Shown: positions 1 through 48,995 of the stretch, one piece after another | Layout: every line of letters starts with the position of its first letter | Position numbering within the stretch: the first letter of the stretch is position 1 | Origin: Amoebophrya sp. A120 | Taxonomy: Eukaryota; Protista; Dinoflagellata | NCBI GenBank assembly: GCA_905178155.1 | Contig: CAJINV010000004.1 | Location: 5,062,619-5,126,618, forward strand | Direction of reading: 5' to 3' | Length of the DNA: 64,000 nt | Notes under the pieces: model-generated | Told to the model about the DNA's origin: nothing | Databases searched by the model: none | What the model saw: the letters and a program-made list of their open reading frames with translations, nothing else | Translations under genes and position numbers: made by a program

Positions 1-3000
1 TTCTCGTAGACGCGCAGAACCATCCCAATACCCTTTTGCAAGACCGCCTGGACGCGGAGAAATCTCGCCTTTTCCCGCAACTGTTGGTACATTTGTTCTG
101 CTTTTTCCCTAGTACCCGCAAGAAGGGATGCATTTCTGGTGTCCTTCGCTTTCTCCGCGTACTTTTCCAACACCCACCCGGCTACGTGGTTTTTAAACCT
201 CGTCTCCTTGGCTGCAGTGGTCGGCGCAAGATTGGCGCTATTTCCACCAAAACCGATTGCGGAAAAAGCCATCCACGCGGGGAGCACCTCTCGCTCTTGC
301 AAATCGAGGTGGTAAGTCAAGCTCCCACGTGGTCCGGAATGAGAAGAACTGGTCGTCGGCAAAAACTTTTCTGACAGCAGGAAATCTAGGTTGGCCATGT
401 GGTCTGCCAGCTGTTCGCGCAGCCTGGGCGCCACCTGAGTTTTCATGTGGCTGCTCCAGTCGAGCAACTCCGCGCTCTATGGAAGTGTCAGAATCGAAAT
501 TGACAAAATCGAAAAATTTGTGATGCACAAAATCGATGTCAGTTGGAGCCTCAGTTTCCAAGTGGCGCATGACAAATTTAGAGGGTACCCAAATCCAGTC
601 TGTCATGCTGTTTGGGCAAAGAAGACTCCGCCTGTAGTGCTACTCTGGCAGCACATTGTATACAACCCCTAAACAGGCTTACAATCGGCCTCATTTGCCT
701 GCTCCCCAATACAGGCCTCCAGTGCCCTGCATTTTATGCGTCACAAATTTTTCGATTTTGTCGATTTCGATCCTGACACATCCATACACTCGTCCAATGG
801 GAAATCGGTTTCCAGATCCCGAGACGAGAAAGATCCACCCGGGTGTCATCTACTTGTACTTCTTCGACGAGCTGCCCATGCTCGCCTTCTTCACGGGCCT
901 GTTCTTCCTCGCCTTCGCTATCCACCTCCATCTCGTTCATTGGTGTGTCCTCTTCGTAGTTTCCCCTCCGGCTTTCGCGAGGCGCAGGCACTTGATGATC
1001 CTGCGAAGAACCTCCGGAGTTTGTAACACTTCGTCCACCCTGCTGCCAGGGGTATCTCTCCACGGTGGGTGTGAACGTGTGCAGGCTGTTCAAGAGTTTC
1101 GCTACTTCCGTCTCCGTCCAGGAATCCGTGATTTCGTTGTGCAAGAAAAACCGTGCCACGATGTAGGGCCAGTTGTACACCGGCTGCCCGACGAGACGGA
1201 GCCCCGCGGGGGACCGGGCGATTTCCTTCGTGACAAAGTCTCGGAACCCGGCCCCGACAGACCCTTTCGCCAGGTCGTGCAGGATCTGCAGCACGCACTC
1301 CTGCGTCTTTGAGCCTTCTTTCTTTGCTTCGAGAAGCTTTTGCTTTGGTGTTCCTTCCGCAATACGAGCTCTTTTGTTTTCACATTCCCGCATGATCTTG
1401 GGGCCCGGCCCTTGCTTGGGTTCAGCGTGATACCTTTTTACCGCATTCGCATCCCCGGACTCCGCGGTCCACAGCACTCCTCTGACCCGCTGCACCTCCT
1501 TGGTTGCACCGGTGCGCGCGGCGTCCGGGGCTGTGAAGTGCCACCAGGCGACTTCCTTGGAGATCGAGTTCAGCAGGTACCGCTCCATCACCTTCTCCAC
1601 ACTGCTGTGCTCGCGAGCCTGTGTGGAAGATTTGCTTCGCGTTTTATGCCAGTGCGGGACGTCAGCAGGAGCAGAATCGTCATTTTCAGCAGTTGCAGCT
1701 CCTGGCGCATCAACGCAAAAGTTTCGCACCTTAGTCCCTCCTGCGGTGCTAGCGTCCGTTGTTTCTTGGGAGGACGAGCTGCTGCAACGTTTTTCTTCGA
1801 GCATGGCGGTGCTCTCACGATCGATTACTCCGAAACCGCCACCGGCTGCCATACTTTCGACCAGCAGCCGCTGTGTCGCCGTGTCGATGGTCTGCCACGC
1901 GGCCCGGCGCTTCTTCTCTTCCTTGGCAAGTTGCCTTTCGGACAGATGGATAACGTCTTGCTCGCGGTCCTTCGCAACGCCGTTGGAAGTTGTGTGGGTG
2001 TGCTTTTTCAAATCGATGTGGTGCATGAGATGTAGGTTTGCGTAGCCAGAAAAGGCGAGATTGTTTGCGGCGGCCGCAACTTGCTGTGCCGGGTTGTTGT
2101 TCGCGAGCTGATCTACTTGATTTCCTTTCAACATCTTCGCAGAAGTTTCTACGCTGCCCTCGTCGAATTTTTTCTGTAACGCCTTGCCTTGAGAGTGAAG
2201 TGGATCACCACTTTCGGCCTGTTCTTTTAGATTCCTTCTCGCGGCGACGGCAATTAGTGTCGGTAGCGCGTCCAGTAGTTCCACTTCCTTCACACTGGTC
2301 AGCATTTGGTCTTTCTTGCTCGGTGTGGTTCCAAACCCGCCTGTCGTGCTGCTACTCACTACAGCCTTGCTGCGAGAAGAAGTCCCGGGTGAAGCAATCT
2401 GCAAAGAGGTACTGCCTAGTCGTGTTGAAACAATCTGCTCTTCCTTGTTTAACTCCTGGAAGTGTTTCTGAATTTCCTCAATGCCCCGGCTCTCCGACTT
2501 TTCCTGTGTACCAAAAATCTTTTTCTGTACCTTCTGGAAAGCGCAATTCAGGAACTGCGTTGCGGCAATCCGTGCCACCCCAGTTCCGTCGTCCAAGTGC
2601 GCACGCAGAAACGCGTGCTCGCGATGTCTTTGTTTCTCAGGAACGGGACCTATTGGGAGCAGCGAGTCCTTCTTGAGCTCCGATAACATCAATGCTTTCG
2701 TGCGGCGCTGGTTCTCCAGCAGAGACAGGTGGTACTTCGCATCAGTTGTGTACCGCGTAGTTGACAAGCCTGTTCCACCCAACATCGCCCCTGCTCCGCT
2801 CAGAGACCGGAACGACGCAGCTGCTCCACTCGACGTAGTACCAAGCCCCCTCGATGGCAACGAGTGCCAGAACACTGCTTGTTTCCTTGCGAAGAATGAG
2901 ACGATGGCAGCCAAAAGCGCGTTTTTCTGGAATCGATCCGCAGCATTGCCAAGAAGGACGTCCTTCGCGGAACTCTCGAGCCACTCCTCAAGGTCGGCTG

Positions 3001-6000
3001 TTTTGATGAAATCTTCCGGCGCAGGCTCGTCCTCGTCGGGGACATCAAGAGCCCCAGTGGTGGGGGAAGCCTGCAAAAAATCTTCTGCTCCCGCTTGTTC
3101 ACCCCCGCCAAACGCGCCCAGCCCAAGACCTTGCTGGCTGTGGCTCCGCTGGAAGGCCAGCTCCGGAGAGGAGTGCGCAGAGGATGTGGCTAGTGCAGGT
3201 TGATGTTGCCCTGTTACAGCTCCGCCCAGTCTATTACTTCCTTTGACGACTTCCGCCGTGCCTACAGTCCGAATAACGCGCGGCCCCCAATCGCGTTGCA
3301 TTCGGGCGAAGCTCGGAGTTCGGCCTCCGGCCCCGCTCTTGTACTTCTTACTGTCTTCGGCCAGTGATGCAGTATCCCCGTGTATGGCACAGTCCGCAAC
3401 CTCCTCTTCTAGTTTTCTGTCGCCACCGGCGCTGGTGGAAGTAGATCCACCACGAGATGAACCCGAGCCTGAACTTCCCGCTTGGTAGTTCAGCCGAAAC
3501 TGTTGCAGCAAGCTCAGAACCTCCAAATACACACTGAGCACCAGCGGCTCGGCGGCGCTATGTGCGGCTTCCTGCTTGCTTTCGCTGAACTTTTTCTCAG
3601 CAAGGGGATCGCCGTCCCTACTAGCAGCTCCTCCAAGAACCCTACTTCTGTCACTGGTCGCCTGCCACTGCGTCATCCGTCTGGCTGGCGGCCGCGGCTT
3701 CGGGTTGGTGGAGTGGAATTTCGCGTAGAACAGGATCTTGTCCAGTTCGTCGTACCAATACGCTGTCTCTTTCCGCAAGCTCGGACCGATCTGCCGTTCG
3801 GCCAACGAACGCAGGGAGGAAAAAGTCAAATGATCTTGTTCGCTGGCGGAATCTGGAGAGAGGAGGCGTCGATACGTCCGGGCGATTTCCTCGAACGGCC
3901 CGTACAGGTAATCAGTCTTCTTTCTTACGGGGGCGTGTTTTGAAGATGTTGAGGCAAATGACTTTGCGTTCTTTCCACCGTTTTGCTCCTGCGCAGGAGC
4001 AGCACTCTCAGCTGACGTCGCTGTTCCTCTCGCGATCCGGTACTGGGGGCGAAGGAGTAACCGCAGCTCGCGCTTCTCGTACAGCGCGGAGAATGCCGCG
4101 TCTTCTTGCTCACTACTATTTTCGCAGCCTCTAAAAAGCTGCTCTTCGTTTTTCTGCAAATTAGCCTTGGATGTGTCCGCCAACTGCAACGCTTCGCGAG
4201 TCAACACTACAGCCTGCAGTCGCAACCGCGCGTCGCGGAAAGTCGTCCTCGAAGTAGACAAAGTTTTTCTTGATGCTGTGCTGGTGCTGGCTGGAGAAGT
4301 GCTGGCATCACGAGGACCACCAGCTCTGATATCATTCGTTCTGGACACCTCGAGCAAAATTTGTTCGCGCTCAAACTGCACTTCGGGGTCGCTCCACAAG
4401 ACCTCCTCGTTTTCCACCACGAAGTTCACAAGCTCCATCAGATCTTGCAAGGTATTCCCATCCGCCAGGGCTGCTGCCAGCGCCGGAAACAGCTTGTGCG
4501 TTTGCTGATATAGCAGCGCAAGCTCTTCCGGATGCGTATCGTCCGCTTTGGCCTTGGAGGAGGGAGAGAGATCTTTGTAGGCGTCTTGGTCCATCATGCC
4601 TTCACCGACTTCTTTTGCGGCACGACGAGAACTGAACACTTCCTGCTGGTACGCGGCTTCCACGTCGTCCTCTGCTTGCGGAAACCATTCCTTGGTCGCT
4701 GACCACGAAAGGTGGTCTGTTCTCCTCGAGGCAGCAGGACCACGAGCTTCGTCATCATGCAAGCCCTGCAAGACGGATTCCCAAAGTTGCCTCTGCGCCA
4801 CCCGCACCCGCGCAGCATGCGCTGCGAACAGCCTCTGAATCCTTTCCACCCGCACGCGGAGGGTGGCAAAGTGCTGCAACAACCCGGTCGCACGGGTGAT
4901 GGACAGACGCGAGTTTGCCAGTTGATCGGTCAGCTCCGTTGCGACAAATTTTCGATCGTAGTTGGAAAAGTTGACGTCTGTCGCCACGACGGTCTGCAAA
5001 ATGTTTTGTCGGAGCATCCAGACCCACGATGAGGAGCTTTGATTGTTCATCCGCATGTTCTTTTTCCTGATGACATCTGCCATATGATTCGCGAGCCACG
5101 GAGCGCCAAGCCGAAGCATGGGGAGCAGCTCGGGAAGAGTTATTTGCCCGTCGTCCGCTGCGGTCGCTTCTGGGGTGCTGGAAACTGCTGCTGGAGGTGA
5201 AGACGCTAACTGCAAGACTTCTCGCAGTAATTGGTTCAGAGAACGCACACGACCGGTTGCGTCAGAATAAGCCGCGTTTTGGTCGTTTTTCGGGCCGCCG
5301 GCCAGGCCGAAGCTATTTGCTAACGCGGTTCGCGTGGACTGCACACTTTCGGCACAGCCCAGGAGTAGACAGCTGCGGTGAATCTCGGTCCACAGGAAAT
5401 CCTGCGCAAAGTGCGGAAGCGAAGGAGAAGCGTCGAGCCGGCCGGGAGAAAGATCCCGGCGCGGCGTCAGACGGTAGGTTTCCAGGAAGTCCAGGAGGTC
5501 GGCATCGATGGCTTTGGCAGCAGTTTGATGTGTATTCCCGTTCACGTGCAGAACTCCGTCGCCATGAAGAGTCTCATCTTCATCCGGGTAATTCAAAGTG
5601 GCAGCAGCACCATTTGAGAAGTCTCCTGCAGCGTCGCTGTCCACCATGTACGCCCGCAAGAGATCTTCCAGGGGAACGTTGCGGATCTGCATTCGGGATG
5701 CAACTCTACTCTGACCGCCAGAAACGACCGCGTCATACACCGTCTCGAGTTCGGCGAGTATGCGGTCCCGTACAGCCGCCCAGGCAGGTCGCTGCAGCGT
5801 AATTGCAGCTCCAGTAGTTTCGGAAGCGGCGCCCGACATAACATTACTGGTGCGTGATGCGATTATTTCCTGGTTGACGAAGCCGTCAGACGCCGTGAGA
5901 AGTCGAAACCGCCTTCGGGCAAATTGCGAATCGTCAAGCTCGCTTTGCACCATCGCATTCAGTGTGTCTTCGAAGTGGAGCTTTGTTTTTCCGCCAGGCA

Positions 6001-9000
6001 CAATTGTTCCCAAAGCCGCCACGTCTCCCGCAGTGAAGCGCAAAAAACGGTTGCGCTGCGAAGCTGTGGGAAAGATCGCTTTCCAATCCTCGTTGGCCTG
6101 AGCGAGCTCAGCGTCTTCAGTGCCGGAGATCTCGCGGGACAGTTTCTTTTCCAACGCAGCTGCTTCGCGCTCCCGCTCTTGCCTTTCTCGATTCAAAAGC
6201 CGGTGAGCGGTTGCTTTGGTTGCCTCATCGGAGAACAAAGCATCGTGATCAACCGCGAGATCAGCGACCCCATCATGAGCTGCAGAAACTCTCTCTCCAA
6301 TCACTTCGTCCTCGTCTTTCTCGCGAGCTTTGTCCTCTGCTTCAATGCGCAAGTACTCCGGCTCGAGTTGCACCGCCGGTAGCCGGGGCTCCTCGACGTA
6401 GATTTGAGCGACCGCAAGAGATTTCACTGCGTCCCACGCGACCTGTGCGTCCTGCTGTCGTGCTGCACGTGCAACTCTGCGTCCGCCTGGTGTTCTTCCC
6501 GCGATCATGATATCGTCATCAACATCATCCAACATCCCGCGCAGCGCCAGCGCAAATTCGTTTTCTACTCGAGCAAGCACGATTTTTTGCTGGGCCAATT
6601 CGTGATCCTGTTCTTGCTGCATTTTCAGCACGGTTTCTATCTTTCGTTCCAACTTCTGCCTGTGGCTCGCCCCGATGGCCGGTGCTAGATCTGTTCGGAT
6701 CAACGCTTTGGCGGTCTGCTTCGTGCGGACGGTGTCCCCATCTTTTGCTTTCCCCAGGTAGACGCTCATCTTTTTCAGCGTCATTTGTGCGATTTGAATG
6801 CGGCGCTTGTGGAGCTGCAGCCGCTCGAGGCGCGCGGCCAAGCGCGGCATCCACTCCGGCCCTGATTTTTCCCGATTTTCTGTTGGCTTCATGACAAGGA
6901 GGTCAACGGACACGAGTTCTTTGAGTACGGGCTTTTTCTCCAAGGTAGCTGAAGCGAGTGAGTCAAACACGGGCACGTCACACTTCACCAGATGTTCGGC
7001 ACTAGCGGACGTCCGGCCGGCGGCAGCAGTTGTACCAGTAGACGACGACCCCACTCCGATAAGTATGCTACGGACATAGTGGAAGAAGTTTTTTTCCACG
7101 TGTTCTGCAAAAGAGTCAATCGTTTCTGCTTGGAGCAAATCCACTTCAGCTAGTCGCCCCGCCAGTGGTTTGCTGCGATGCGCCTGTTCCATCTGTATGA
7201 GGAGTATTCGGGCATTGTCTTCTTGCACATCCGCATCGACAGGGACAGCTACTTCTGCATGGCTGCTCTCATTGCCGTCCACAAGTTGTGCCTCTGTTCT
7301 TTCACCTCCGGAATTATCGTGTCTATCAACCGGCGCCAAAGCTGCGCCCACAAGGACGTCTTCAACGCTTCCAAACCGAAAAAATTCCCGATCCACATTG
7401 ACTTGCTGCAGGGCGGAGGGCGCCAGTGCCTCCGGTCGTATGACGATCACCCGTTTTGCTCCTGCGTCGTTGGAGGTTGTGCCAGTACCTCCGACGTTCA
7501 TCATCTCTTCCACTGGAAAATCCATTTTAAACTCCTTCACGCTTTCCTCGAGCTTCTCCAGACTCTGTCGGACGTTGGTCACCAGCTCCTCATTCCTCGA
7601 GCTACCCTCCTTTGCCTCGTAAAGATTCCCAATACTCGTTTCCGCCACCAACAGTGCGCCCGCCAGCATTTTGCGTGCCTTTTGCTTTTGATAGACCGCT
7701 TTCTGCAGCAGTGTGATCTGCTCTCGGACGACCTGTTTTTTCCGGACTTCCAACGCGTGAAGCGCATCGGCAACCGTGGGATTAAGTGCCAGGTCCACGC
7801 TGTCCGAATGCAACGTCGCGTAGACAGCAGGCCCGGATTTCGATTTGTCGCTTGTTTCATTATCTCCAAAGCAGTGCTCCCAGATCGTCGCCAGAGCCGC
7901 TAAAGAAACCGAGTCAATCCGTCCGGGCGACTGTAGCTGCGGTACTAAACTCGTCGTTGTGGCAGTGCTGATCATGCTTTCTGCAGAGGTTTTTCGGTGA
8001 CCCATCAATTGCGACATGGACGAACCACGGGAGAACTTCATACTCCTTGCGGCAGTTACAGCAGTTTCTTGGTCGTCGAAGTCTTCATCTTCATCGGACT
8101 CTTCGTCTGGATCGTTCTCATCTGAGCCAGGGTTAGACATTTTTCCCGTGCTGAGTCTACGACCGAAGGACGTGGCGCTTTGCACGTTTCGCATCGTCGT
8201 TCCCGCTCCTGTGCCGTCCATGTCAGCATCGTCGTCTTCGCTGCTGGTAATTACAAAGGCCCGACGGGGGCGCACGATTTCGCCCGCCAGGAAAAGGAGC
8301 TGCTTGAGCCGTGATCTGTCGGATAATTGCTGCAGTTTGTTCTCCTCCTCGTGCCGGTAAAGTTGCGTCGCGCCCTGGGCAAGCACGAACTCGGCGTCGT
8401 CCACGTGGTCTGGGAGGGAAACCACCTGCGCTTCGGGTACTTGCAAAGTTGCTTTCATGATTTTTATGCTCCACACCGCCTTGCGCAGGTCTTCTACCGA
8501 GGTAACGCTCGCGGCCTTGCGCGGGAGAAAGCGCGCGCGCTCGGTGAACGACATGGTTGTTGGTTCGACGAGAGGACCTGCAACTTGTTGCAGAGGTAAG
8601 TCAGGAACAGGAGCCTCTTTCTGTGCAGCAGGAACTGTTGATTCATATCGCTCCGTCGACGAAGACACCAAGGAGGCGCTCTGCAAAAGCAGACTAAATG
8701 CCTGCAGAAGTCGTGCTCGGTGTTCCGTGTAGCGGGAGCGCATAGCCGCCGCATGAGGGAAGGACGCAATGAAGTCGCGCTCGAACGTTGGGCGCTCGTG
8801 AGTTTCGTAGCTGGCGGCCGCCAACAAGGTTGGTTGCTCCTCGTCCCCGCTGTCACAGTGGGTAACCGAAACGGAAAGCTCGCCTTTTTCGGGCGTCGCG
8901 TCTCTGTATTGTCTCCGCAGAATGTCGGTTTTCGGGAGCTCTAGTAGTTGGATGACCTCTAGCGGTTCCTTAGCGGCGTCTTTGTCATGGTATGCAGCAA

Positions 9001-12000
9001 AAGGCTTGAAAAAGTCGCTCACCCCAGCGCGCACTTGCGCACCCATGCGGCACTGCGACCCGGAGGTCTGGTGGTCGCCTGTAGCTGTAGGCTGACTTAG
9101 ACTTTCATCAGCGGTTGCGTCCGAGAGTCTTCCGACGCAGTACGGGGTTACCGGGATTTTGTAGAGCGCAGCAACGGCTTTCGCCTCGAGCTCCCCGGCA
9201 ATGTTAAATTGCTGTGTGTACGCAAGGTACTCTTCCACAAACTCCCTATCTTCCCCGTCGCGGCCGTCCCGAGGCGGCAGTTTTTGCTGGATGTGCTCCT
9301 GCCGGGAAAAAGTCTCAAAGGCTTTTCCCTGGGCGTGGGTTCGCAAAACCGGTCCCATGTTCGGGAGGCGGAGCATCAGTGTCGCGACCTGTTCCGCGAG
9401 CATCTTCGCCGTCAATTCCCCGCCGCCGCATTGCTGCTGGAATAGGCTGTCCTGGTCAAGAACTCCTGCGTGGTCACTGCGAGATGTTGTTGGCACTAAA
9501 TCTCTTTTCACGACCTTGCGGCTCACACCAGAACTACTGCTGCGTTGCTGTTGCGTAGCACTACTACCCAACGTAGAAGCGGAATAAAACACCCCGTTGC
9601 TCCGCCCGGTTTGGCAAAATTTTCGAACCCAGATACTATTGCGGGTCAAAACCGCGTCCACCTTCTCCGGGTGATACTTGTTCAGCTGATCTGCCAGCGC
9701 GTCGAACAGCCCTACTAGGAACACCGGCCCCTCTCCTGCCGCTTCGCCAACATTGAGGACGCCGACCACTTTCGACAGTCGCACTTGCGCAGCCTTCTCC
9801 TGTGCGTTCTTGTTCAGTTCTTGGATTTCGCTCGGCGGTAAAACACCGCCCGTCATGTGTTTGTTGGTGTTCCGGCGGTGCGTGACATCACGCTGGAAGA
9901 TTTTTTCTGTGAGGACAGTCCGTAAATCGTTGCGCACTTTGGTGGAGAGCCCGAGTTGGGCTGCTTCGTCAAAGTCCTTGATGATTCTTTGTGGAACGTT
10001 GTTTACCAGAATCTCGGTATGCAACACCCGTGCCCAATCGGATCCGGTTTTCCGCAGTTCCGGCCCCTGCTGCTTCACGCCCGCGAAGGAACTTGCGGCG
10101 TCGAACATGTTAATGAACAGTGGCAGACCGTGGACGAGAACATCCAGAAGTTTCTCCTGAACATTATTTGGCAGCCCCAGTCTACTCGTCGACAAATGCG
10201 GTGAACTGCTGTCGCTAGCTGCTGTGCGGTCTTCCAAGATGAACTTCATCCTTGCCAAGGCGTTTCGCAACCGCTGGCTCTCAGTCGCGGCAACCACCAG
10301 GTCCGCTGCGGCCAGCATAATCCGAAAGAGCTGCTCCAGTTTTTCGCCCGAGTCTGGGTTCACATCCGCCTGTAAAATTTTGTCTAAGACGAAGCGCCGT
10401 ATCTCCGTAAAGGTAGAAAGAGCGGGGTGCAGGGCTCTCTCTGAAGCAGGTTTAGCCGACGGTGTGGGGCTGCCTGCCGCTGTAAAATGCTCCAGAATAC
10501 CTCCAGTCTTGAACAAATCTTCGACTGCCACGTCCGTGAAATCGGTAACGTCTGTCTCTCTCGGAATAGCGTTCGCAGCGAGCTCGCGTTGAAGACGCGC
10601 CACGACATCAGCGTCTTGATGACCGGCTAGTTGTAGCAACGCCGGCTGAGCTATATCGGCGAAAGGTTGATGCTCTTGCTCCGCTTTCTGCCGCATAAGG
10701 TCCGTCTCCGTACTGCCTTGCACGGCCGGAAGCTTTTGCCGGTACGCTTCTTCACACTCAAGAGCTGCGAGAATTCCCGGCTCGACGCCGCGCGATGTGA
10801 GCAGCTGCCGCACTTGCTCCTTCATTGCATTGTCCACTTGTAGTCCTCTCGTCGGGTGTCCTACTTTGTCATCCAGTTCCCCTGATTTCTCGCGTTTATT
10901 CTGCCCGAGAATGAGGGCCCGGGCGGTGTCTGCCGTACGGGATTTGCCAAGATCCAGCACAATTTGTTTGGCAAAGGGATTCTGAAGCAGCTCAGCGAGC
11001 GTGTCAAATGCCGACTTCAAAACCGCGCTACTCGTGCGTCCGAGCCGTATTACCGCGCGGAAAAGAAACAGCAACTGTTCGTGAAACAATTTGCTGATGC
11101 GTTGCTGGAGCGACTCGATTTGTGCTGTAGTTGTAACAACGGAAGATAAACGCGGCTCCTGCTGGGCCTGAGACGCAGCATCTTCGCCTTCTTTGCCCTT
11201 GACTTTTAGGCGACTCTGCAGCGCGTCTGCGAGCTCATCGACATCTTGAGTCCCGCCACGTCCTGTGGCGCCCATGGAGCGACTTAGGTACGCCAGGCGC
11301 TTCAACCACGAGAGCGGCAACAAGAGGATCGCAGCCCGCTTTTTCAACCCACCTTTCGTTGCGCGGCCAAGGTACTCGAGAATGGTGAGCACCTGATTGA
11401 GTTCGATATCGCGACCCAACAGAGAGAGCTGCGACAGCCGGGCCAAGATCTTGTTCGTTTTTTCCCAGCTCGAGACCGCAGGCAAATAGGCAAAGTCCTC
11501 TACAGATACAGTCCGCTGCTCTCGTTTCTGTTTCTGCTGCCCTGATGCATCCACCTTTGCCACCGACGGTTTTTCGCGTAGTTCTTGATCGGCTTCGGGT
11601 TTTTTCGCCGCGGCTATTTTCATCAACTTGTCTTGCTCCTTTTTAAGATCCTCGTCAAGGCAGCCGGCGACAGTGATCAAGTTCAGCAGGAAGTCCGCAC
11701 TCAGGTGCATCGGCTCGTGTAGCAGGTCGCAGAGTTCGCGGAAGCGCATGTCCTCCAGAGACAATGTGCCATCAATGACAGCGTCTTCGAAGGGATTTGG
11801 GTCGTCTCTCACGAAATCTGCCGTGGTTGCGGTCATTTCTCGTGGTGCTGCCCTTAGTTTAAAGCTGTCGTCCGTGCTAGGGTCGAGTCGAGCAGGACCA
11901 TGCGTGGTGGCTTTGGCAGCAGCACTGCCCTCCCGCAGGGTATGCTGTTCGCCCGGAGACAATTGCCTGCTCCGCTGATAATTTTCGCGCCACTCTGGGT

Positions 12001-39000: not shown

Positions 39001-42000
39001 TCATGGCACCACCAGCGCTGCGCATCCCGACGGAACGGACGAATTCCGTTGCGAGTCGCACGGCCTTCTGCGTTTTCGCGGTCTCCTCAGGATTCTTCGT
39101 GCGCAGCTGCCAATCCTTCTTCTGGAGCGGCTGCAAAAGCTGTGTCGGGGTTGCTCGCGCAAGCTCCGCGCTCCAGGACCAAGAAAGCGAGTCAGCGGAT
39201 GCTGGCACTAGTGGGTCATCGTCGTCCACATTTGGGGTCAGTAAGAGGTACTCCTCTAATTCTCCATAATCAGGACCACGCGACAATCGTTCAGCCTGTA
39301 AAAGTATCTTAACCTTAACTCGGCACCTGCTGAACAGTGCGAGCAGTATGTCTGAGTTGATTCCGCTGCGCTCGTGGTTCCAGGCCCTGAGCTTGTCCTT
39401 CCTAGTTTTCTGCGCTGCTTCCAATTCCAAGTCACGATAAGGCCACATTAGGTAGTTCAGGTCAATGTTCTTTTTGTCTTCGGCTTCTCGTCCTGACTCA
39501 ATGTTGAGAACGGCCGCGTCTTCTGCTACCACTTCTTTCCAGGTTTGGATTAAAGGATAGAGCACTTCAAGCAGGCCTCTCCGGCCCAGCACAAACCCTC
39601 TCGGATCGTCTATACGCCCAATCAGCTCCCGCTTGCCCTTCTCGGTCAGCACAAGCTCGCCGGCTTCGCTCTTTGTCCTCTTTGCCCAGTCCTTGCAATA
39701 CTTGAATGTGTGGGTATTGCTATTGACATCCAATCTCACCCGCACTGTTGGCCGATTGCTATCTTCTCCGGGGTGCACCAGACCAGTGAGTAAATTTTCT
39801 TTGTGCTGCTCCACTGCCAGCAATGTTGGGCTGACGAAATCCCGCATCAGTCTTTGAAGAAGCCTGTTTGACACTGCGCGACAGGATGCTAGCTTCTCTA
39901 TCACTTCCAGGAACACGCTCTGCAGGGGGGTCCGTTTGTTCGCAGATGGGTCGTTCGTTCCGTATGGGTCAGCATTCTGTTGCTGCTCCGCCAAAGAAGG
40001 GGAGATCGAGAAGATGTACGGCGGCCACGCAAACCAATTCTCTTCCCGCTCCGCCAAACGGAACGCAGCTTCTTCCAGGAAGGCCAGCGACTTCGCATGA
40101 TTTTGCGTCTCGCACGCCAGGGTCCGATCCTTGAGCCGAACATCCGACATGTGCGCCGGCACGGCACGAATTACGCTGCGCCTATGGTCATTCACGGCCT
40201 GCCTCTGCTTCGTTGTCGGCGCGTCGCCTGATGCTGCAGCATCCCCTAGTAGAAATGTTGGATCTGATCCAAGGTAACTTCCGGCGCCCCCTTCTGAGAG
40301 TCGCGACAAGAGGGACGTCGTGCCAGGCGTAGCCTCCTCGAAGAACGACGCGAGCAAATTGTCTTTCGCCTCAATCAAAATGCTTTTCTTCTGCTCAGTT
40401 ACTGAGGAGAAGAAAGCATCCAGTAAAGTAGTAGAGGTCGTGGCGTCGCCTTGTTCAGGAGCCAACGTCGACTCTGCACTTTCCCATTGTGCAAGCGCTG
40501 CGTTGAAAATCCGCGCGACCACCTGATCGAAGAATGGCGGGGAATGATCCGAGTGTACGAGCATGCCAAATTCGTGCACGAGCTCGGTGAGAATGGCTAT
40601 TTCACTCCCGGCACCGTCCATGCCGTCCGATTGCACCCGCAAGTCTGCTTGAATCGTTTTGTGCAGCGAGCCTAAGCGGAGGCGCAGTTCCTCTTTCACC
40701 AAGTCTTCGGCTCCTGAAGCTATAGAAAAGGTAGAAGTTGAGCCTTCCCCTACCGTGCCCGTTCCAATTCCGCCTTCGTCTTCATCAACATCAGGCACGA
40801 CATCATTGGTCGGAAGTAGCTGCGAAGAACTCGTCGCGGGGACGCCGTCAGCGTCATTCTGTTTCATCGGACTGACTGCTAGCCGCAGCGGGAAAAAGAG
40901 AGCACGAAACGCTTCAGCGCCGCTGCCGACGAGCGACATCAGACCAGCGTTGATGCGCGAGCGCACGGCGTCCAAAAACGCGAGCAGCAGCGCCTCCCGC
41001 ACGATTTTCGGGTGCGCCTGGAGGTTCAGTGCGTCAAGTTTCTGGATGACCATGCTCTTGCTCATCTCGTCAGCTCCGTCTATGCGAAGCGTGTCCACTA
41101 GGCTGCGGTAGATATTCATTTCAGAGTCATCGTCTCTAGGAACCGCCGTCGCCGGTTCTTGTAGGTTCTTTTCAACATCATGTGAAGATAGAATGCGTGA
41201 CTGCAGTAGCGAATGTTCTCGTGCAGTGCGAAGCAGAGTCGTCATGACGATCAAACCGAAGTTTCCCGCAAAAATTCTGTACGGATCGACATCTGAGTCG
41301 GTTTGGCTTTTCTCCGTCCTCGTCTTCCTCGTCCGCTGTGCTTCTACCAGAAAGCTATTCACCGCAAAGGTGAGGATTTCGGACCCTGACTCGATGAGAG
41401 GTAGTTTCTTTGAGATAAAAGAAAGCTGGGCCACCTGGGCATTTTTCTTCTCAGCTGCAGCGACGTCGCGTAGCAAAAGCACATCCTGAACCAGAATTTG
41501 CGCTATGGTTCGCCGAAAGAGTGTCACGATGCGTGGATCTTCGTGCTTCCCCAACCCGAGGTCATCTTCCGAGTCCGGCTCGGGGTCATCTTCGCTGTGG
41601 ATCAACACCGCTGGGTGCAACCACCTAGCAACTTGCACATCAAAAACACCTCCTTCGTTTGTAGTCTGCTCGGTCAGTCGAAGTAGCTGGCTCATACCGA
41701 GCAAGTAGCGCGGCGTGGCAGCCAGGCTCCACGATTTGTGTGCATTGCGAAGCGCGTCCACTTTTGCGAATTGCGTTCGGCAACCCAAACGAAGCAGGTC
41801 AGTGTCGAGAGAGTCGAGCAACCCAACGTCGTGAATGCCAGTTCTCGCTTGTTCGGCCAAGTACATGTTTCGGTTGACAAACTTTTTTTGCTGTTCCAAC
41901 AGGGTAAAGCGCACAACTGCGCCAACCAGATCGCCGACTGCGTCACGCTGGGTGTCCAAGAATCGGCTCTTCATCGCCCCCGCCCCGCTTGCTTTTTTAC

Positions 42001-45000
42001 TGCGGTGATCAACTTCCATTCCGAAAAACAGCAAGGCCCGCTTCAAGTTGGTATTCACCTCAACTTCGTAAACATTTCTGTTAAAGCCGGCGAGCATAGC
42101 GAACAAATCCGTTGATATTTTGCGAACAGACGCTGTCAGTTGAGTGCGGAGCTGTTGCTTTTTTTCATCAATTACAATTTTAATATTATCCTTATTCTTC
42201 ATCAGTAGGTCTGCGGCGATCTTCAGCTTCTGATGTGCTTCAGGTACATCAACCAGTTTCTTCGCCACCGGAGACAGCATGCGTTATCAAATGCAAATAT
42301 GTCTGGGTCTGGAAATTTGTGATGCTAAAATGTGCAGCATGACCACGAAAACGCTCTCTCATGCAGGAGAGCATGACAACGAGTTTGCAGAACGTGAACG
42401 CTTCGTCATACGCGCTCCGCATGAGAAACTGCATCTTTGTATGACAAGGAAGGCTGCGACTTCTTTTGTGGGTCATGCAATACAGATCCCACAGGAATGC
42501 AAGACCAGCATTGCAACTTCCAACATTTTTCCAGACCCAGATATATTTGCAATGCATATGCGTTGCCGCAATACAAAACTGAGGTACGACAGCTGTTCCG
42601 ATGGATCTACTTCGGGGATCAAGTTGGTTCTACTTGCAGCGGGCACCGCGTTGTAAAAGCCTTGCTTCCCTCCGTCATCTACTTGGTCGACCTGTAGAAG
42701 TTCTTCGGGAAGAAGCACAGCCGCTTGCTCAGCGATCTCCCGCGCGAGTACTCGTCTCATTTGCTGAAACTCCAAGCGCTGTGCGCTCGCAATCGCAGGC
42801 ACCGTGCTCCCGTACAGATCATCGCGGCCTAAAAACACTTCAGCACGAGTTCCAAGAAACAGATGCACGCATTGAGACACGTACCGCGCGCTCGCTAAGG
42901 AGAGGTGGTAGTTCTTGCCGTGTTTATTTCTGCCTGCAGGCTTTCTCTCGTCCCCAGCAGGACCGGCACCTTTGTTCGCTCCTGCTCCGGCCGATTGCAT
43001 CGCCCCGCCCTGGATCTGCACGCTGATCATCCAGAACGAATCTAGAACCGCTTGGCGATTAGCCGCATCAAGTCGCTCCGCGATGCTTCGCAGCATGGCA
43101 CGCCGGCCTTTTGGCTGCTGGTGGTATACCATCTGAGGCGATTTTGCGTTTTCGATTTCGTGCCCAAAATCTTGCTCATGGTCCCTGCTACTTTTCTGGT
43201 GAAAACTCCTGCTGGACAAAAAAGCGGCCTGTTCTTTCACCAACATCTCCTGTTCCCAGTCGTAGTATCGCACTGCAGCGTCATTGTCTTCCCGGTACTC
43301 ATTTTCCTTCGTTGCAGCGTTCTTGACTTGTTTCTTCGGCAGCTTGAGCGCCGAGAAAAGCAGCGGCGGCTTCCGGCTGTTCATTCTGCTGATGCCCGAG
43401 GCTGCACCTCCCTGGGTGGTCGTAGTTGCCGCAATATCTTCCAACAAATCTGTTCCTGTCGCCAACGACCTGATGCCGCCGCCGTCTTCCACCCGCTGGC
43501 CCGCAACCTCGAAAGAACCGCCGCGGAAGACGCTGCCAAACAGCGACTGAGCGAACTCGCGATTGCCCGCCGCGCTGCCAACCCGCAGCACAAAACTTTG
43601 CAACAGCGCGTTGCGCGCCACCGGACCTAGTATGTCTTGCCCGTACAAGTCTTCAGAGAAGCCACCTAAAGAGACGGACGCAAAATCGGGACGAGATTGC
43701 AACAGGTCACGGTGGCGGTGCTGCGACGCGGCTTTTTGCCCCATGAACTCTTCGAAACCAGAGGTAGCACCTCCTGATGCCCCACCAGTGGCAACTACAC
43801 TTTGGGAGAGCTGCGCCAACTTCCGCTCCCGTGCTTCCTGGATTTCGTAGACTTTTTCCTTGATTTTCCGATAAAGTTTATTATGCATCGCGTTGACCAA
43901 TTCCTGATCACCTCGCCTTTGTGCAGGCCGCCTTGTTCGCGAATGCTTCTCATGCGGCCCACCCCCGGGAGGCGCGTTCATTGGAATACTAGTACTACCA
44001 CCCTGACCCCCAATACCCGGCGCGGGCTGAAGGGGCGCGCCACCAGAAGTCGGCTGCCCCCCACGACTCGCTCCTGCGTTGCTCAGGTTCTTCGCATCAG
44101 ATGCACTGCTGGTCCGACCGAAAACCAAGAGCTTCAGCAGGGTCGGGAAGAAATACTGTCTCGGCAAGCCGACTGCGACTCGTCCCGCAGTGTTTTCTAC
44201 TTCCGCATGACGAGAAGCAGTCATTTTCTTTTTCCTCGATGTCGAAAGGCTCTCATCCATGGGATTGGAATTAGACTGCCGTTCTTCCTCCAGCTCTTCT
44301 ATCAGCAGCAAATGTTCTTCGAGTTCTTCGATCGGAGCTTGCAACCCCTGCGACATCTGCAAGTTCAACCGCAAGATAGCTGTGATTTCACTGCCCACCT
44401 GCGCTCCGGACGAAAGGACTTCGAGGAACAGAGCAAGGTTGCGCTTTTTCTGCTCGGAGCGAACCCGGCTTTCCTGATCTCCTTGCGACGCAGAATTATC
44501 CTCCCCACTCATCCGGCTTGAAACGTCATCTCCGAGTACGCTGTCTTCCTCAGCTGAGGAATCGTCGACGGCCATATCAGCCGTGTCACCTGGATCCTCT
44601 TGCTCACGACCAGCAGCGGCACCGGCGTCGGAGGACTCTGCTTGATCCACATCCATCGCATTCGTGTCCTGTTCCTGCCCCGCCAACTCATCTTCATCTT
44701 CTTCGCTACCAGATAAATCACCTGAGGCGAAGGTTCCACCTCGACTGCTGTCATTCTCGCTTTTGATGTCTTCCTCCGTGAGAAGCTCCTTCTCGAGCTC
44801 CTGAAACGGCTTCCCCGAGTAGTTTTTGTGCATAAGCAGCGCCAGCCGGGCCACTACCTCGCTCTGCAGCTCCACCAGCTCGCGCACGACTTCCGGATCC
44901 AGGCGGAGGATTTGTGATGGTGAAGTTGTACTACCTCTGGGTGGAGTAGTACTTCTATTTGTACTCGCTTTAGCACTGCTTTCTTTGTCCTCCGTCGCGG

Positions 45001-48000
45001 CTTGCACGTAGGATCCCAGCATGAACTCCCGCAAAATCCGCAACAGAGCGAGAATCCGGCGGACCGCGCGCACCGAAACCCGGGCCCGCACCTCAACTTG
45101 CTCCTCGGAAGCGGCAATCACTTTCGCCTCGCTCAGTTTCTTGGCCAGTTGCGTCAACTCGGATCGCAGGTGTGGAACAAGATGCTTGTGAAGCACGGCG
45201 AAGAGCGTGTCAAAACAAGACTCGCGACGAGCCCGGAAATAGTTCATCTGCTCCTGCTGTGCGTTGTGAACATTTATTTTCGGATCTATCTTTTCTTGCC
45301 CAAGACAAGTCCGAAAGTATTGCAGCGCGTTATCCTGCTGGGCACCGAGGTGTAAGAAACGTACTGAGTCTGCTCCTGCAGCATGGAAGTCGTCCTCTCC
45401 GGAGGCACCATCCTCAGCATGATGATCGCCTGCTCTCTTCCCTTCTTGGCGCAAAGCCGTTTCTGCGGTCGTGCTGATCTTGAATTTCGCCAGCCGGTCT
45501 TCTTCGTAAAGCATCAGAAGTTCCGTGTCTCTCGCTGCCTGTTCCGCGTTTTGGAAGAAGGATAGGAGCAAGTCCACAAATTCTCCAACGACAAAACTAG
45601 GACTGTTCTCTTCCTCGCTTGCAAACTTACGCTTCGCGTCCAACGCCAAACGCGTTTTTTCCTCCTCTGGCAGCGCGGCAGTGGCAATAGGGTCAACATC
45701 TTCCTCTACTTTTGATGTTCCAGAATTTCCAAATTCGGTGTGGTGTGCCAGCGGCACGAGTTTCTGTAAGGCGAAAAGCGTAGTGTCTAGCTCGGTGTAC
45801 TTGCTGTCCCCCGCGCGGCCAGATTGTAATAAAACCAGCTTTGCGGGGTCCTCATCTTTGAGAACGTGCAGGACGAGCAAAACAAGATCTCGAAGTGCAG
45901 GCGTGAACGGCGGGTTTGGAGGCAGCTTCTGTGAAGCGGTTGCTGAGGCCATGCTGCCCGTTCCTGTCGGATGATCCAGCGGAAGGTGAGCAGTCGACCC
46001 AGAGGAAAGAGTTGTACCAGCTTGATGTTGATGTTGTGCCGCTGCTGCTAAATCTAAATCATGGCCAGGTGAAGATGTTGATCCACCGGTCTCTTGAAGA
46101 TGACTACCCCTGGAGGCGCCTATGGATTGCAAAAGTGTCTGGGTCTGGAAGGTCACAACTTGTGATGCTGTCTGTGATTCGAAAAACATTTGTATTGCAT
46201 GACCAGCAAGAGGGGTCGGGTTTGTCCTACGTGGAGATGGCATTTCTCATGCGGTAGAGAGAGTATCACAAAGCCCTCGAAAAATCTGTGATGCTACGAC
46301 ATGCATGACAGACATCATGGCTCATGGAAAATATGCATGACAAATCTAGAAATATTCCAGACCCAGACATTTTTGCGTTAGATAGCGCCAGGAGGAAAAC
46401 TACTTCCAGCTGTACTTTTACCAGAGATGGACATCAACTGACTGATGTAATCGGAGTAGTGCCTGTCGGCGTCAAAAAGCAAGAATCGCGAGGACGTCTG
46501 GGCTTCCGTTAGGGTCCTCACTTGAACGCCCTCTTTATCTTTTCCGCCGGGTGGAGCTCCGTCGTCTACATCTCCGAAAGCAGCCGCTTCCCCTGCACCT
46601 GCTGCAGCTGTCAACAACTTGTTGGGCAACGGCAGCGTAGCAAACTTCAGAAGGTCTCCACCTCGGTCCGCGAACTTTGGCTCCGCGGCTTCCAGGGCGG
46701 ATTTTTCGGCGTCTGTGGCAGGAGTTGGATTGTACACGTAGTCGTTCAGCAGTGCTGCCTTTTGGTCTTCGATCTCCAGCGACAACACGTTACGCTGGTG
46801 TAACAGCGAGTATCTGCTGACATCCAGCGGACGGTAGTGCCCGATCGTGGAGATTTGCTTTTTTTTCCCATGTTGTCCATGGTCGTCAAGAGCGTGTTCC
46901 CGCTGCGACAGCTGCGCTGTGGAAAAATCGTCGTCAAAGTGCTGATCCGAGGGACCGGCTAAACCGGGAAAGGCCAAGTTGCGCAAAAGCTTTGCCAGCA
47001 ACAAAAAGTCGCCCATTTGATACATCGTGGTCTCCTTGTCTCTCGTGATTGACTGTGGTTGATCAACCTCTTCTCGCACGCCCTCCTTGCGGCCCGGTGT
47101 GGGGGGCACGACTGGTGTGAACAGGCTGCTGGACGTGCGTCGTACCACATCATCAGACTGAGTCTGATGTTTGCCGCCAGCTCCTTCTGATTCATCGTCT
47201 TCGACTAATGCGACTACACTGCTTCTGTACAGCTTTTCCGCCGCTGCTTCGCGCAGAACCAGCGCTACATCCACTACCAGCTTGACACGAACGTGCGCTG
47301 GGATGACGGTCGGACCATTCCCGTAGGCGCTGAGACGGTCCTCGGTCATCTGCGGGATCTTTTCCAAAAAGGCTTCGTACCGTTCTTCTTGCATAAAATT
47401 CTGACTGAATTCGTGAACCTCGGCAAAATTTTCGTACATGTGCCTTCCCCACTGGAGCGCGCGAAGCGGTAAGGTGCGTTCCTGAATAGTAGTACTTGCC
47501 GATACAACAGATGGTGAAACGAGCGGGCCGAGAAGACCGTCGGAAAGAAGTTGTCGCCTGGAAGACGTCGAAGATTTGGGATCACCAGCACGCTGCCACG
47601 TCGGTCGTTCCGTGACGAGCTGCTTCACAATCTGGTACGCCAAAAGTAGTGCGCGGCGCTTCACTTCGACAGGAACAGGCGGACCGCGACGGGAAAGTAC
47701 AGCTTTTGATGCACCTGTGCTCTTAGCTTCTCCTTGCGCTCGGCTTCCTTGTCTCTGAAGCTCGAATGAGCGGTCTGTAAGCGTTTGCATCAACGACCCC
47801 AGAATCACCTTCCACAGCATGCCGGCGCGGCGGCCCAGGGGCGCATACGGATTCAGGATATTTTTAAACATGGATATTCCACGATCTTCTCCAGGTACTA
47901 GTAGTTGTGCTGCACCACTTTTATGCTTGTCCTGAGGTACTTGCTGTCGTCCTCCACCCCGCTCCTCCAACTGCAGCAATGCGCCCAAAAGCATCGCCAG

Positions 48001-48995
48001 CGGATGCGGACCGTCGTACTGGTGCGTTTTCGACAAATCTGCCCAGCACTTGTCCTCCGCGGTCCGGACACTCGATTTCACGACGTTGCGAAGCCGCTGC
48101 AACCTCGTTTCGTGCAACTTGACAACGGCAGAAGTAGGGTATGAGTTGCAAAAGCAGTGGGTAATTGTCGTACTTTTTTAATTCTTGATCCGTACGTTTA
48201 CTCTTGTTTGGTCCTCAAGAAGAACGTAGTATCTACAACTTGGTACATCAACTCTCCTCATTTTTTGGCATGGCAAATATGCTAATGCTATCGCGCTTGC
48301 ACTGCAAATAAGTAAACCATGCAAATCCATAGACAATCAATGTACAGCTGCTGTATCTGTACCACGACTGCGCTATAAACTTTTTCCCCGAAACATACGT
48401 ACTGCGCGTCCTCGATCTCAAACAAGGCTTCCCAGAACGCGGCATTCTCCGGGAAGGAGCTCCGGACGAGTGGGTCGTCTCGTCCCCCTGTACCTGCTTC
48501 TTCGCCGCGACTACTAGTGCGATGTTGTTTTCTCTGTCGCAGCTCCCAATCATGTACTAGCGGCTCCCCTTTCAGCGGCGCAAGGAAGGAGGAGATCCGT
48601 TGCTCAACCCGCTCGACGAGGGGCGCGAGGCCCTTCCACTTCGAGCCTTCCTTATAAATGTGATCGAGTGTCGGACAGATTTCGTCTTGTCCTTCTTCCC
48701 CCGGACTTGTAGAAGTTCCTTGCGGGGGGGGCGGTCGCACGTCCGAGCGGGCGGTGAACTTTTTCAAGGCATGGCTGCCAGTGAACACGGCGTTCTCATC
48801 TTTAGCCGAGCTTGCAGCTCCTGTACTTGCGACAGCGCGGTGGGAGCTGCTGCCAGCAGAAGTACTGCCTTGGGCCGCAAAAGCTTCGTAAGGAGCACAC
48901 AGCAGCGCGGCAGCTGCCACGGCAAGTGCTACGGCCGTGAAGCTGCATCCCTTCTTGAGTGGCAGCATCATGCTGCTCCGAGTGTTTTTTGCCAT
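1..48995 (-). CDS. Giant multi-exon hypothetical protein (at least ~15,000 aa, 3'-incomplete), probable N-terminal signal peptide
   Basis: Approximate exons in transcription order: 48995-48333 (link tentative), 48138-46386, 46119-42560, 42283-33975, 33700-31623, 31510-30246, 30108-29995, 29619-28256, 28038-25100, 24844-24754, 23687-22006, 21753-788, 476-1. Every TIR/TSD element removal rejoins neighbouring ORFs in frame (PPGA|SRGS, LRQR|MLSP, SKNL|PYGT, RRPT|ERVA, AENV|KTEK, DDAF|GIES, EERQ|REED, NLPT|RSKQ, NDIR|QAEE, HWTS|SAEL). 476-1 is open to the window edge. Exon 1 begins MAKNTRSSMMLPLKKGCSFTAVALAVAAAALLCAPYEAFA. No domain confidently recognised. Confidence 0.85.
478..786. mobile_element. 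Introner, family E (309 bp); intron 477-787 is GT-AG on the minus strand
   Basis: 56-bp TIR with 5 mismatches (478-533 vs 731-786), TAT...ATA ends, TSD cgctc/cactc. Homologous to 62610-62943 in the opposite orientation. Confidence 0.92.
21755..22004. mobile_element. Introner, singleton (250 bp), non-canonical intron
   Basis: ~45-bp TIR (atggcgttctcaa...aactgtta), ends AAT...ATA, perfect TSD tgccg (21750-54 and 22005-09). Removal joins the 611-aa and 7013-aa ORFs in frame; no GT-AG solution within the direct repeat. Confidence 0.9.
23629..24814. repeat. 57-60-bp direct repeat of coding sequence flanking the 1064-bp element
   Basis: 23629-23688 matches 24755-24814 with one synonymous mismatch (GCC/GCT); both copies encode LSAPVTPSSAIYSQTLDQS. 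Confidence 0.95.
23689..24752. mobile_element. Long introner-like element (1064 bp)
   Basis: ~55-bp TIR (tatgagatgtactacgcga...), TSD tagag (23684-88 and 24753-57), GCGATTCAA-type motif repeated in both TIRs and internally. Removal restores the frame. Confidence 0.88.
24846..25098. mobile_element. Introner, family A (253 bp)
   Basis: TIR core tgcaaaaatgtctgggtctggaa, TSD gttgg, TAT...ATA ends, in-frame join NLPT|RSKQ. Confidence 0.92.
28040..28254. mobile_element. Introner, family B (215 bp)
   Basis: TIR tatcg..gaaaaaagt..gttaca, TSD ttgtc. Full-length homology to 52161-52373. Join EERQ|REED. Confidence 0.92.
29621..29993. mobile_element. Introner, family C (373 bp including a 222-bp nested insertion)
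   Basis: TSD cgaaa, TAT...ATA ends. Colinear with 58934-59082 once the nested insert is removed (151 vs 149 bp). Confidence 0.9.
29667..29881 (-). mobile_element. Probable 5'-truncated non-LTR retroposon/SINE 3' end with (ATG)n tail, nested in an introner
   Basis: Flanked by direct repeat tctgcat (29660-66 and 29882-88). On the minus strand it ends ...gcgggtgtccactacATGATGATGATG; the same end occurs at 58772-58797. Confidence 0.7.
30110..30244. mobile_element. Introner, family D (135 bp); intron 30109-30245 is GT-AG on the minus strand
   Basis: TIR core tgcaaaagtatcg(c/t)actcgtat, TSD cgttc. Related to 63332-63532. Confidence 0.9.
31512..31621. mobile_element. Minimal introner, singleton (110 bp)
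   Basis: 28-bp TIR (tattccctggaaatcaaccatccccatc), TSD gtggg, two gcatgacaaa motifs. Join RRPT|ERVA. Confidence 0.92.
33702..33973. mobile_element. Introner, family A (272 bp)
   Basis: 30-bp TIR with 1 mismatch (tatgcattgcaaatatgtct(t/g)ggtctggaa), TSD gaggt. Join SKNL|PYGT. Confidence 0.93.
42285..42558. mobile_element. Introner, family A (274 bp), inverted relative to the 24846 copy
   Basis: TSD tgcgt. Left end tatcaaatgcaaatatgtctgggtctggaaatttgtgatgc is nearly the reverse complement of the right end of 24846-25098. Join LRQR|MLSP. Confidence 0.93.
46121..46384. mobile_element. Introner, family A (264 bp)
   Basis: TIR core tgtctgggtctggaa, TSD gcgcc, TAT...ATA ends. Join PPGA|SRGS. Confidence 0.92.
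48140..48331. other. Probable first intron of the giant gene (degenerate introner or ordinary intron)
   Basis: AT-rich gap between ORFs with weak TIR (tatgagttgca / tgcaaatccata) and no TSD. Removal plus 2 or 5 nt gives in-frame YIDC|PTSAVVKLHE. Alternative phase-0 GT donors with an acceptor at 48118 also preserve the frame. Confidence 0.5.

Follow-up and report, generated by a model that had tools for sequence, protein, structure and literature searches.

A predicted giant gene of Amoebophrya sp. A120, interrupted mainly by introners and encoding a SecA-like motor

A clade of eukaryotic secA-domain proteins has been described that are long, patchy in distribution, prone to transfer and uncharacterised in function (Duplouy et al. 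2013, PMC3639933). Among bacteria, giant proteins of Omnitrophota and Actinobacteria exceed 10,000 residues and carry divergent SecA_DEAD and preprotein-binding domains; their SecA-like domains commonly lack the scaffold and wing and adjoin membrane segments, and the authors propose that these domains help export the giant protein itself (preprint 10.1101/2023.11.21.568195). In Amoebophrya, multicopy introners form non-canonical introns that have terminal inverted repeats and direct repeats of 3 to 5 nucleotides (nt) at their borders (Farhat et al. 2021, PMC7789003). Here we analyzed a window of 64,000 nt from Amoebophrya sp. A120 (GenBank assembly GCA_905178155.1, contig CAJINV010000004.1; G000:C4:5062619-5126618 in our numbering) and found that the minus strand of window positions 1-48995 is very probably part of a single predicted giant gene whose product carries a SecA-like motor.

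All long open frames between window positions 49013 and 1 are on the minus strand. From 49013 down to base 1 they measure 241, 599, 1257, 2781, 766, 461, 516, 1011, 618 and 7037 codons, and one further minus-strand open frame leaves the window at its left edge. An initial annotation, made from the letters of the window, had joined such frames through 12 frame-preserving junctions into about 45.2 kb of coding sequence with no stop before the edge, and our model agreed closely: 12 introns were found in the window, and the 45,176 coding nt, or 15,058 codons, run from an ATG at 48995 to the left edge with 0 stops. The adjoining DNA, which had been named as the place to look for the C terminus, carries the frame on through nine further exons to a TGA at window position -30662. 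The full predicted model comprises 21 exons and 20 introns, with a coding sequence of 67,992 nt in a gene spanning 79,660 bp (G000:C4:5031954-5111613), and its joined exons form a single unbroken frame of 22,663 codons; the window holds the 5′ two thirds of the gene. The earlier figure of at least 15,000 residues was right in calling the product giant and fell short of the 22,663 residues given by the model.

The exons have a GC content of 56.3%, the same value as that published for A120 exons genome-wide (Farhat et al., PMC7789003), against 44.7% in the introns and 41.8% in the upstream DNA (49014-51104), and the GC of their first, second and third codon positions (0.62/0.46/0.61) reveals codon periodicity. 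An open frame of 7,037 codons cannot be the product of chance. Pfam returned 0 domains for any in-window exon or open frame, and self-BLAST of the protein detected no internal repeats. The joined protein was used only for frame checks and for local BLAST against paralogue frames and fetched proteins; database and folding searches were run on individual exons or on individual open frames of the paralogues.

Short elements with inverted ends, starting with TAT and ending with ATA, occupy the gaps between the frames. Scoring them blindly by their direct and inverted repeats left the borders ambiguous, since the element ends are palindromic, and a rule was used instead that asked for TAT...ATA ends and a 5-bp direct duplication and was searched blind to the reading frame. 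This rule gave one solution per gap, and excision of the element together with one duplicate copy yielded the required length modulo 3 at 16 of 16 testable gaps, where chance would give one third at each. The full model contains 18 TAT...ATA introners, each with a 5-bp target duplication, alongside 2 GT-AG introns; within the window, introners make up 11 of the 12 introns, the remaining one being the GT-AG intron after exon 1. Sixteen of the 18 duplications are exact and two have one mismatch, and one element has a variant 3′ end. A strict (ungapped) scan located introner elements in the gene region at the gaps only, and its two further matches (window positions -47084 and -47667) are outside the gene, some 16 kb past it. 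The genome carries the element of intron 10 in at least 40 copies. A pair of introners encloses each of two small exons, which measure 111 and 88 nt. Excision of intron 12 restores the SecA motif VIVSTNL/AGRGTDY (the slash marks the junction), and because TNL/AGRGTD is formed only after the rule-based excision, this motif serves as an internal check of the rule. Compared with the introner elements described previously (PMC7789003), the introns here share the inverted ends, the border direct repeats and the multicopy state and show no difference in kind; here the excision rule has been checked against protein homology across junctions. The locus is a clean, homology-verified test of introner removal, which takes out exactly the element and one 5-bp duplicate. 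In window coordinates, the exons and introns are as follows.

Exon 1, 48363..48995, minus strand: begins with the ATG at 48995, in a frame open from 49013; 3′ end tentative.
Intron 1, 48118..48362, minus strand: GT-AG, 245 nt, tentative.
Exon 2, 46385..48117, minus strand: in the open frame 46381-48177.
Intron 2, 46116..46384, minus strand: TAT...ATA introner, duplication GGCGC, 269 nt; unique solution, with a length that fits the frame.
Exon 3, 42559..46115, minus strand: in the open frame 42476-46246; matched once, weakly and in collinear position, by the paralogue on contig C1.
Intron 3, 42280..42558, minus strand: introner, duplication ACGCA, 279 nt.
Exon 4, 33974..42279, minus strand: 8,306 nt, in the 2781-codon open frame; collinear with the paralogues on contigs C1 and C15.
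Intron 4, 33697..33973, minus strand: introner, duplication ACCTC, 34-nt inverted ends, 277 nt.
Exon 5, 31622..33696, minus strand: matches in both paralogues.
Intron 5, 31507..31621, minus strand: introner, duplication CCCAC, 115 nt.
Exon 6, 30245..31506, minus strand: open frame and paralogue alignment.
Intron 6a, 30105..30244, minus strand: introner, duplication GAACG, 140 nt.
Exon 7, 29994..30104, minus strand: 111 nt; the frame joining exon 6 to exon 8 is the only one open through it.
Intron 6b, 29616..29993, minus strand: 378-nt introner, duplication TTTCG, carrying a nested insertion of about 229 nt.
Exon 8, 28255..29615, minus strand: open frame and paralogue alignment.
Intron 7, 28035..28254, minus strand: introner, duplication GACAA, 220 nt.
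Exon 9, 25099..28034, minus strand: open frame and alignments to the C1 and C15 paralogues.
Intron 8a, 24841..25098, minus strand: introner, duplication CCAAC, 258 nt.
Exon 10, 24753..24840, minus strand: 88 nt, last residues SAPVTPSSAIYSQTLDQS.
Intron 8b, 23684..24752, minus strand: TAT...ATA element of 1,064 bp, duplication CTCTA, 1,069 nt.
Exon 11, 22005..23683, minus strand: open frame and paralogue alignment.
Intron 9, 21750..22004, minus strand: introner, duplication CGGCA, variant 3′ end (...CCATT), 255 nt.
Exon 12, 787..21749, minus strand: 20,963 nt, residues 7914-14902, in the 7037-codon open frame.
Intron 10, 473..786, minus strand: multicopy introner, duplication GAGTG/GAGCG, 46-nt inverted ends, 314 nt.
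Exon 13, first part, 1..472, minus strand: lead-in to the SecA-like motor; the exon continues to G000:C4:5061851.

Exon 12 has long collinear matches to both paralogues at 21-38% identity and no introner motif inside. The 18 residues SAPVTPSSAIYSQTLDQS occur in frame twice, at the end of exon 10 and at the start of exon 11, flanking the 1,064-bp element. The 3′ edge of intron 8b could therefore sit 57 nt further on, with the repeat kept twice or once and both versions in frame. Introns 6b (29616-29993) and 13 (L003:4575-4730) belong to one introner family, with the shared pattern TATGCA.TAC.AATTTCCCGTACATGTAC...GTGCGGGAAATT...GGATA; the element measures 373 nt in intron 6b and 151 nt in intron 13, itself a 156-nt intron, and the difference of 222 nt fits a nested insertion as the source of the extra DNA in intron 6b.

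The genome contains two collinear giant paralogues, on contigs C1 and C15, which makes three copies in all. The C1 paralogue (G000:C1:10117285-10177755) consists of open frames of 14,739 and 5,348 codons with one introner between them, about 20,000 residues in total, and its large exon is of much the same size as the longest A120 exon listed by Farhat et al. (44,016 bp; PMC7789003). Aligned to this paralogue, exons 4 to 20 and, weakly, exon 3 keep their order strictly, and the equivalents of exons 3 (weakly) and 4 to 15 are all held in its 14,739-codon frame. Single C1 alignments span introns 10 and 11 together (37% identity across these junctions), intron 12 (58% identity), intron 14, and introns 15, 16 and 17 together. 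Since this alignment preserves order, 15 exons here correspond to one continuous frame in the sister gene, and that single 14,739-codon frame indicates that the pieces belong to one gene. Collinearity also extends over more than 100 kb of the C15 copy, where introns 16 and 17 fall within a single alignment. The C15 paralogue has many introns, occupies more than 100 kb at about G000:C15:~210000-312343, contains a run of N at 269074-271308 and extends past the stretch examined.

These alignments bear directly on whether the frames could instead be several neighboring genes of a one-directional cluster, each matured by spliced-leader trans-splicing. Amoebophrya genes do lie in one-directional clusters (PMC7789003), and further minus-strand open frames occur upstream at 51-60 kb. 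The gaps, however, consist of introners alone, whose excision preserves the frame at all 16 testable gaps; the C1 paralogue reads through in its single long frame, eight junctions are crossed by single alignments, and the SecA motifs are restored across intron 12. We therefore consider separate genes hardly credible, and the initial proposal of a single giant gene is upheld by the in-frame introner gaps together with the collinear paralogue frames. The upstream open frames, of 359, 483, 1018 and 451 codons (window 51108-60426, minus strand), have no Pfam domain. Introner motifs lie near 58839-59049, and these frames, set off from the giant gene by 2.1 kb of DNA with 42% GC, are thus probably parts of one or more other genes split by introns.

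A SecA-type motor was recognized at residues ~15,185-16,430, just past the window edge, with the SecA_DEAD match beginning 123 codons beyond it. Pfam gave SecA_DEAD (2e-14), SecA_PP_bind (6e-8) and weak P-loop_SecA matches on either side of intron 12. The first nucleotide-binding domain (NBD1) is present, with the Walker A sequence GEGKT at residue 15194 and the Walker B sequence DEVD at 15672, and aligns to SecA chains; it contains insertions of about 370 and 300 residues. The preprotein cross-linking domain (PPXD) is represented by WSDGIHQ at 16124, with 121 residues that align with residues 298-415 of Escherichia coli SecA, and the second nucleotide-binding domain (NBD2) by GRTARQG at 16393 and by TNLAGRGTD at 16355, the latter restored when intron 12 is removed; the GVTGT motif is intact too. 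Among solved structures, SecA chains were the sole matches to the motor. The same set of motifs, Walker A and B, WSDG(L/I)HQ, G(M/V)TGT, TN(M/L)AGRGTD and GR(S/T)xRQG, is common to bacterial SecA (PDB 5eul, 1tf5, 2fsf), from which the motor here differs in being set at three quarters of a giant protein, in the NBD1 insertions and in having no detected scaffold or wing. SecA_SW (scaffold/wing) gave no match in exons 15-17, and for the first two pieces this held with a cut-off as loose as E 10. In SecA, the scaffold and wing domains include the two-helix finger that docks on SecY.

AlphaFold had been suggested for segments of the protein, and it was informative for the motor of the C1 paralogue (44 aligned sequences), the core of which was predicted with a predicted local distance difference test score (pLDDT) of 80-96. 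When this model was used for a fold search, the top ~30 matches were SecA chains (E 8e-15 to 9e-8), and other helicases followed at ~1e-4. Two long helices after NBD2 were modeled at pLDDT ~57-76, which may represent a divergent remnant of the scaffold/wing. SecA itself acts together with a SecYEG channel of a bacterial or plastid membrane. The A120 plastid has been lost (Farhat et al., PMC7789003), which argues against an organellar Sec role for the motor. Distant SecA-like matches (33-36% identity over the preprotein-binding region) lie elsewhere in the genome at G000:C18:142452-142760, C2:13083181-13083432 and C13:194403-194657, and are probably other SecA-motor genes.

With the motor in place, it appears very improbable that the locus is a relic without expression, or a paralogue in decay, whose frames stay open by chance or through recent duplication. 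Evolution of the gene is very fast, with the body only 21-38% identical between paralogues, many transposons have inserted at the locus, and no public full-length model was found in the searches run. Nevertheless, a stop-free frame of 68 kb with codon periodicity cannot persist without selection, every catalytic motif of the motor is intact, and the three diverged paralogues all retain giant open frames.

An exhaustive protein search with exon 14 yielded 2,313 relatives, the best 150 of which show 30-45% identity over the motor with E values down to 6e-38. After two A120 fragments, the best relatives are proteins of 2,000-4,400 residues from rotifers, the amphipod Hyalella and the fly Bradysia. 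Judged from match scores, the motor matches eukaryotic secA-domain proteins at E 1e-38 to 1e-21 as opposed to ~1e-10 for bacterial SecA chains. Local BLAST extended the similarity to a post-motor block (residues 16909-17131) and a Gly-rich block (residues 20301-20403), for which the family consensus is a Gly-rich hydrophobic block with TRxFxWxxYxKQKA. The Pfam content of the family is SecA_DEAD, SecA_PP_bind, P-loop_SecA and Helicase_C; ankyrin, TPR or HEAT repeats occur now and then, and SecA_SW was found in none of 12 members. By its sequence relationships, the predicted protein belongs to the eukaryotic secA-domain family, the usual size of which it exceeds roughly five-fold. The initial annotation had called it uncharacterised, which is true only in part, as a motor ~120 codons past the window edge places it in a family.

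The motor, the post-motor block and the Gly-rich block are shared with such members as Bradysia XP_037031668.1, Hyalella XP_018022148.2 and rotifer CAF0875274.1, which are likewise long and without a detected scaffold/wing. These proteins, however, have 2,000-4,400 residues, in a family of about 1,500-4,400 residues overall, versus 22,663 here (and about 20,000 for the C1 paralogue), they show no detectable similarity to the ~15,000-residue region before the motor, and the motor and the hydrophobic block are separated by about 800 residues in them compared with about 3,900 here. Further, the giant gene differs from other secA-domain members in its three paralogues, its signal-like N terminus and its 18 introner introns. 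With the bacterial giants it has in common a size above 10,000 residues, SecA_DEAD and preprotein-binding domains, the lack of a scaffold/wing and a nearby membrane segment. The bacterial proteins contain many transmembrane helices, beta-helices and carbohydrate-active or peptidase domains, no such Pfam domain being found here, whereas the protein here comes from a eukaryotic nuclear gene with spliceosomal and introner introns and is mostly helical, with three conserved hydrophobic segments. The likeness is one of the SecA motor and general layout.

The only public protein that matched the gene in the searches run is CAD7945775.1, a partial sequence of 551 residues. It joins the SecA-like pieces of exons 13 to 15, omits the insertions and parts of exon 14, and reads into the introner of intron 12, by which the AGRGTD motif is lost; it looks like a model built from SecA alignments. 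With this fragment as the public product and 11 of the 12 in-window introns lacking GT-AG borders, the expectation that GT-AG gene finders would fragment the gene is supported.

The protein predicted from exon 1 starts with MAKNTRSSMMLPLKKGCSFTAVALAVAAAALLCAPYEAFA followed by AQG. This start comprises a basic n-region, a hydrophobic core of 16 residues and an A-x-A (A-F-A) site, in keeping with the signal-peptide-like segment initially noted for this exon. Residues 16-34, the signal-like segment, form the strongest hydrophobic segment of the protein and the first of three that are conserved at matching places in the C1 paralogue. The second, at ~16,660-16,695 (roughly 36 residues), follows the last motor motif by ~230 residues, and the third, at ~20,323-20,350, is located in the glycine-rich block (~20,300-20,400) that is conserved across the family. 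The layout is a ~15,000-residue body, the motor, a hydrophobic segment, ~3,600 residues, the Gly-rich block and a ~2,300-residue tail. The initial annotation had considered a possibly secreted product; because of the three conserved hydrophobic segments, the sequence suggests a product that is membrane-anchored and not freely secreted. The ~15,000-residue body is predicted to be mostly helical with S/A/G/T-rich linkers. Composition (A 10.6, L 9.6, S 8.8 and E 8.1%), with about 10% of residues in hydrophobic-poor S/A/G/E/T-rich stretches, fits the alternation of Leu/Ala/Glu helical blocks and S/G/A/T linkers that had been noticed from the window. In the body, Pfam gave no known domain, BLAST detected no repeats, and the searches run found no relatives beyond the paralogues; exon 12 had no match among public proteins of 1,210-12,315 residues.

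The C-terminal tail depends on intron 17. A first full model ended at a TAA at window position -17151 and was dropped, as the C1 paralogue runs past the equivalent point. A GT donor lies at the exact point where the C1 similarity stopped, and a pyrimidine-rich CAG acceptor lies in phase 6.5 kb downstream. Removal of this 6.5-kb GT-AG intron generates TFRG/WSGYASHKAFS here versus TFQGWGRYNVQKAIS in C1, in a motif region conserved throughout the secA-domain family; an introner pair was searched for at the same site and none was found. Intron 17 is this large because a ~6.2-kb long terminal repeat (LTR)-type element sits inside it, of which the genome has at least 12 near-full copies at 93-96% identity. 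Pfam gave no match on the stop-broken frames inside the intron and its element. The terminal direct repeats of the element, ~530 bp each, are at window positions of about -17207..-17725 and -22893..-23421, and its site of insertion was a small GT-AG intron. Should the LTR element block splicing of intron 17, the product would stop at -17151, and the tail of 2,286 residues would be lost or separately expressed from a downstream frame of 1,740 codons that starts with its own ATG. The multicopy element filling the intron and the in-frame TAA only 17 codons past the donor, along with that ATG, speak for this early end. Yet the donor (G/GTAC) and a strong acceptor, rich in pyrimidines, are both intact and agree in phase, and no stop interrupts the 2,286 codons of the tail frame, a length near the 2,252 codons of the C1 paralogue. 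An early end is thus unlikely in our view, and we retain the spliced model of 22,663 residues.

Several observations weigh against the model as drawn. If intron 17 stays unspliced, the stop reached 17 codons on leaves a protein of 20,393 residues. The different splicing of intron 12 in CAD7945775.1 could reflect real RNA. Exon 6 and two ranges of exon 12 had no match in word-index protein searches, and AlphaFold prediction of residues 9780-10300, a block aligned with both paralogues, gave helices and coil at pLDDT 43, unusable for a fold search, so that folding of segments succeeded for the C1 motor and failed within the window. Language-model look-ups returned weak neighbors, all of them large helical-repeat scaffold proteins, which serve as leads only. 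A cleaved signal or a normal signal anchor would make the ATPase face the lumen, which is unexpected for a SecA-like motor. At the N terminus, intron 1 forms the only ambiguous junction, with multiple in-frame donor/acceptor pairs: its best acceptor candidate is a pyrimidine-rich ...CTTCTGCCGTTGTCAAG just before 48117, and several donors are in frame (48398 GTATGT, 48362 GTACAG), so that exon 1 may vary by as many as 12 codons. For exons 1-2, no match to a paralogue was detected, and the link of the signal-bearing exon to the rest rests on its position, the open frames and the analogous N-terminal hydrophobic segment of C1.

The last of these points would fit a start of translation in exon 2 or later, with exon 1 being another small gene or non-coding and the giant protein being cytosolic, a location that would suit an ATPase motor; the several in-frame solutions for intron 1 and the missing paralogue matches of exons 1-2 speak for such a start. 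But exon 1 is a 235-codon ATG-started frame (241 codons from stop to stop) adjoining low-GC intergenic DNA, it carries a textbook signal sequence, and the C1 paralogue likewise has a hydrophobic segment near its N terminus. Taken together, we judge a later start to be distinctly unlikely and keep exon 1 as the beginning of the giant gene.

With the gene read from exon 1 through the spliced tail, a mechanism can be outlined. The giant protein would enter the secretory pathway, and its conserved hydrophobic segments would hold it in the membrane. The SecA-like motor may then spend ATP on gripping unfolded polypeptide and shifting it alongside that membrane, be it the long arms of the protein itself or a client, and the helical body may act as a very long scaffold or tether. 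We regard this membrane-held giant with an ATP-driven polypeptide-handling motor as possible, though short of probable; its proposed motor role parallels that put forward for the SecA-like domains of bacterial giants. A bolder and improbable version, for which the role proposed for the SecA-like domains of bacterial giants would be the parallel, is that the motor threads or extrudes its own multi-thousand-residue arms across or along the membrane, a self-translocating giant, and that SecA-type motors might be a recurrent, cross-domain answer to extreme length.

At ~22,700 residues, the product would rank among the largest predicted eukaryotic proteins outside the titin class, and the genome would encode three such paralogues. 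The locus also connects the literature on the eukaryotic secA-domain family with that on bacterial SecA-bearing giants, two fields not linked before, and makes the link of extreme protein length with a SecA-type motor testable in a culturable host-parasite system. If true, a self-translocating giant could belong to the secretory or invasion apparatus of the parasite.

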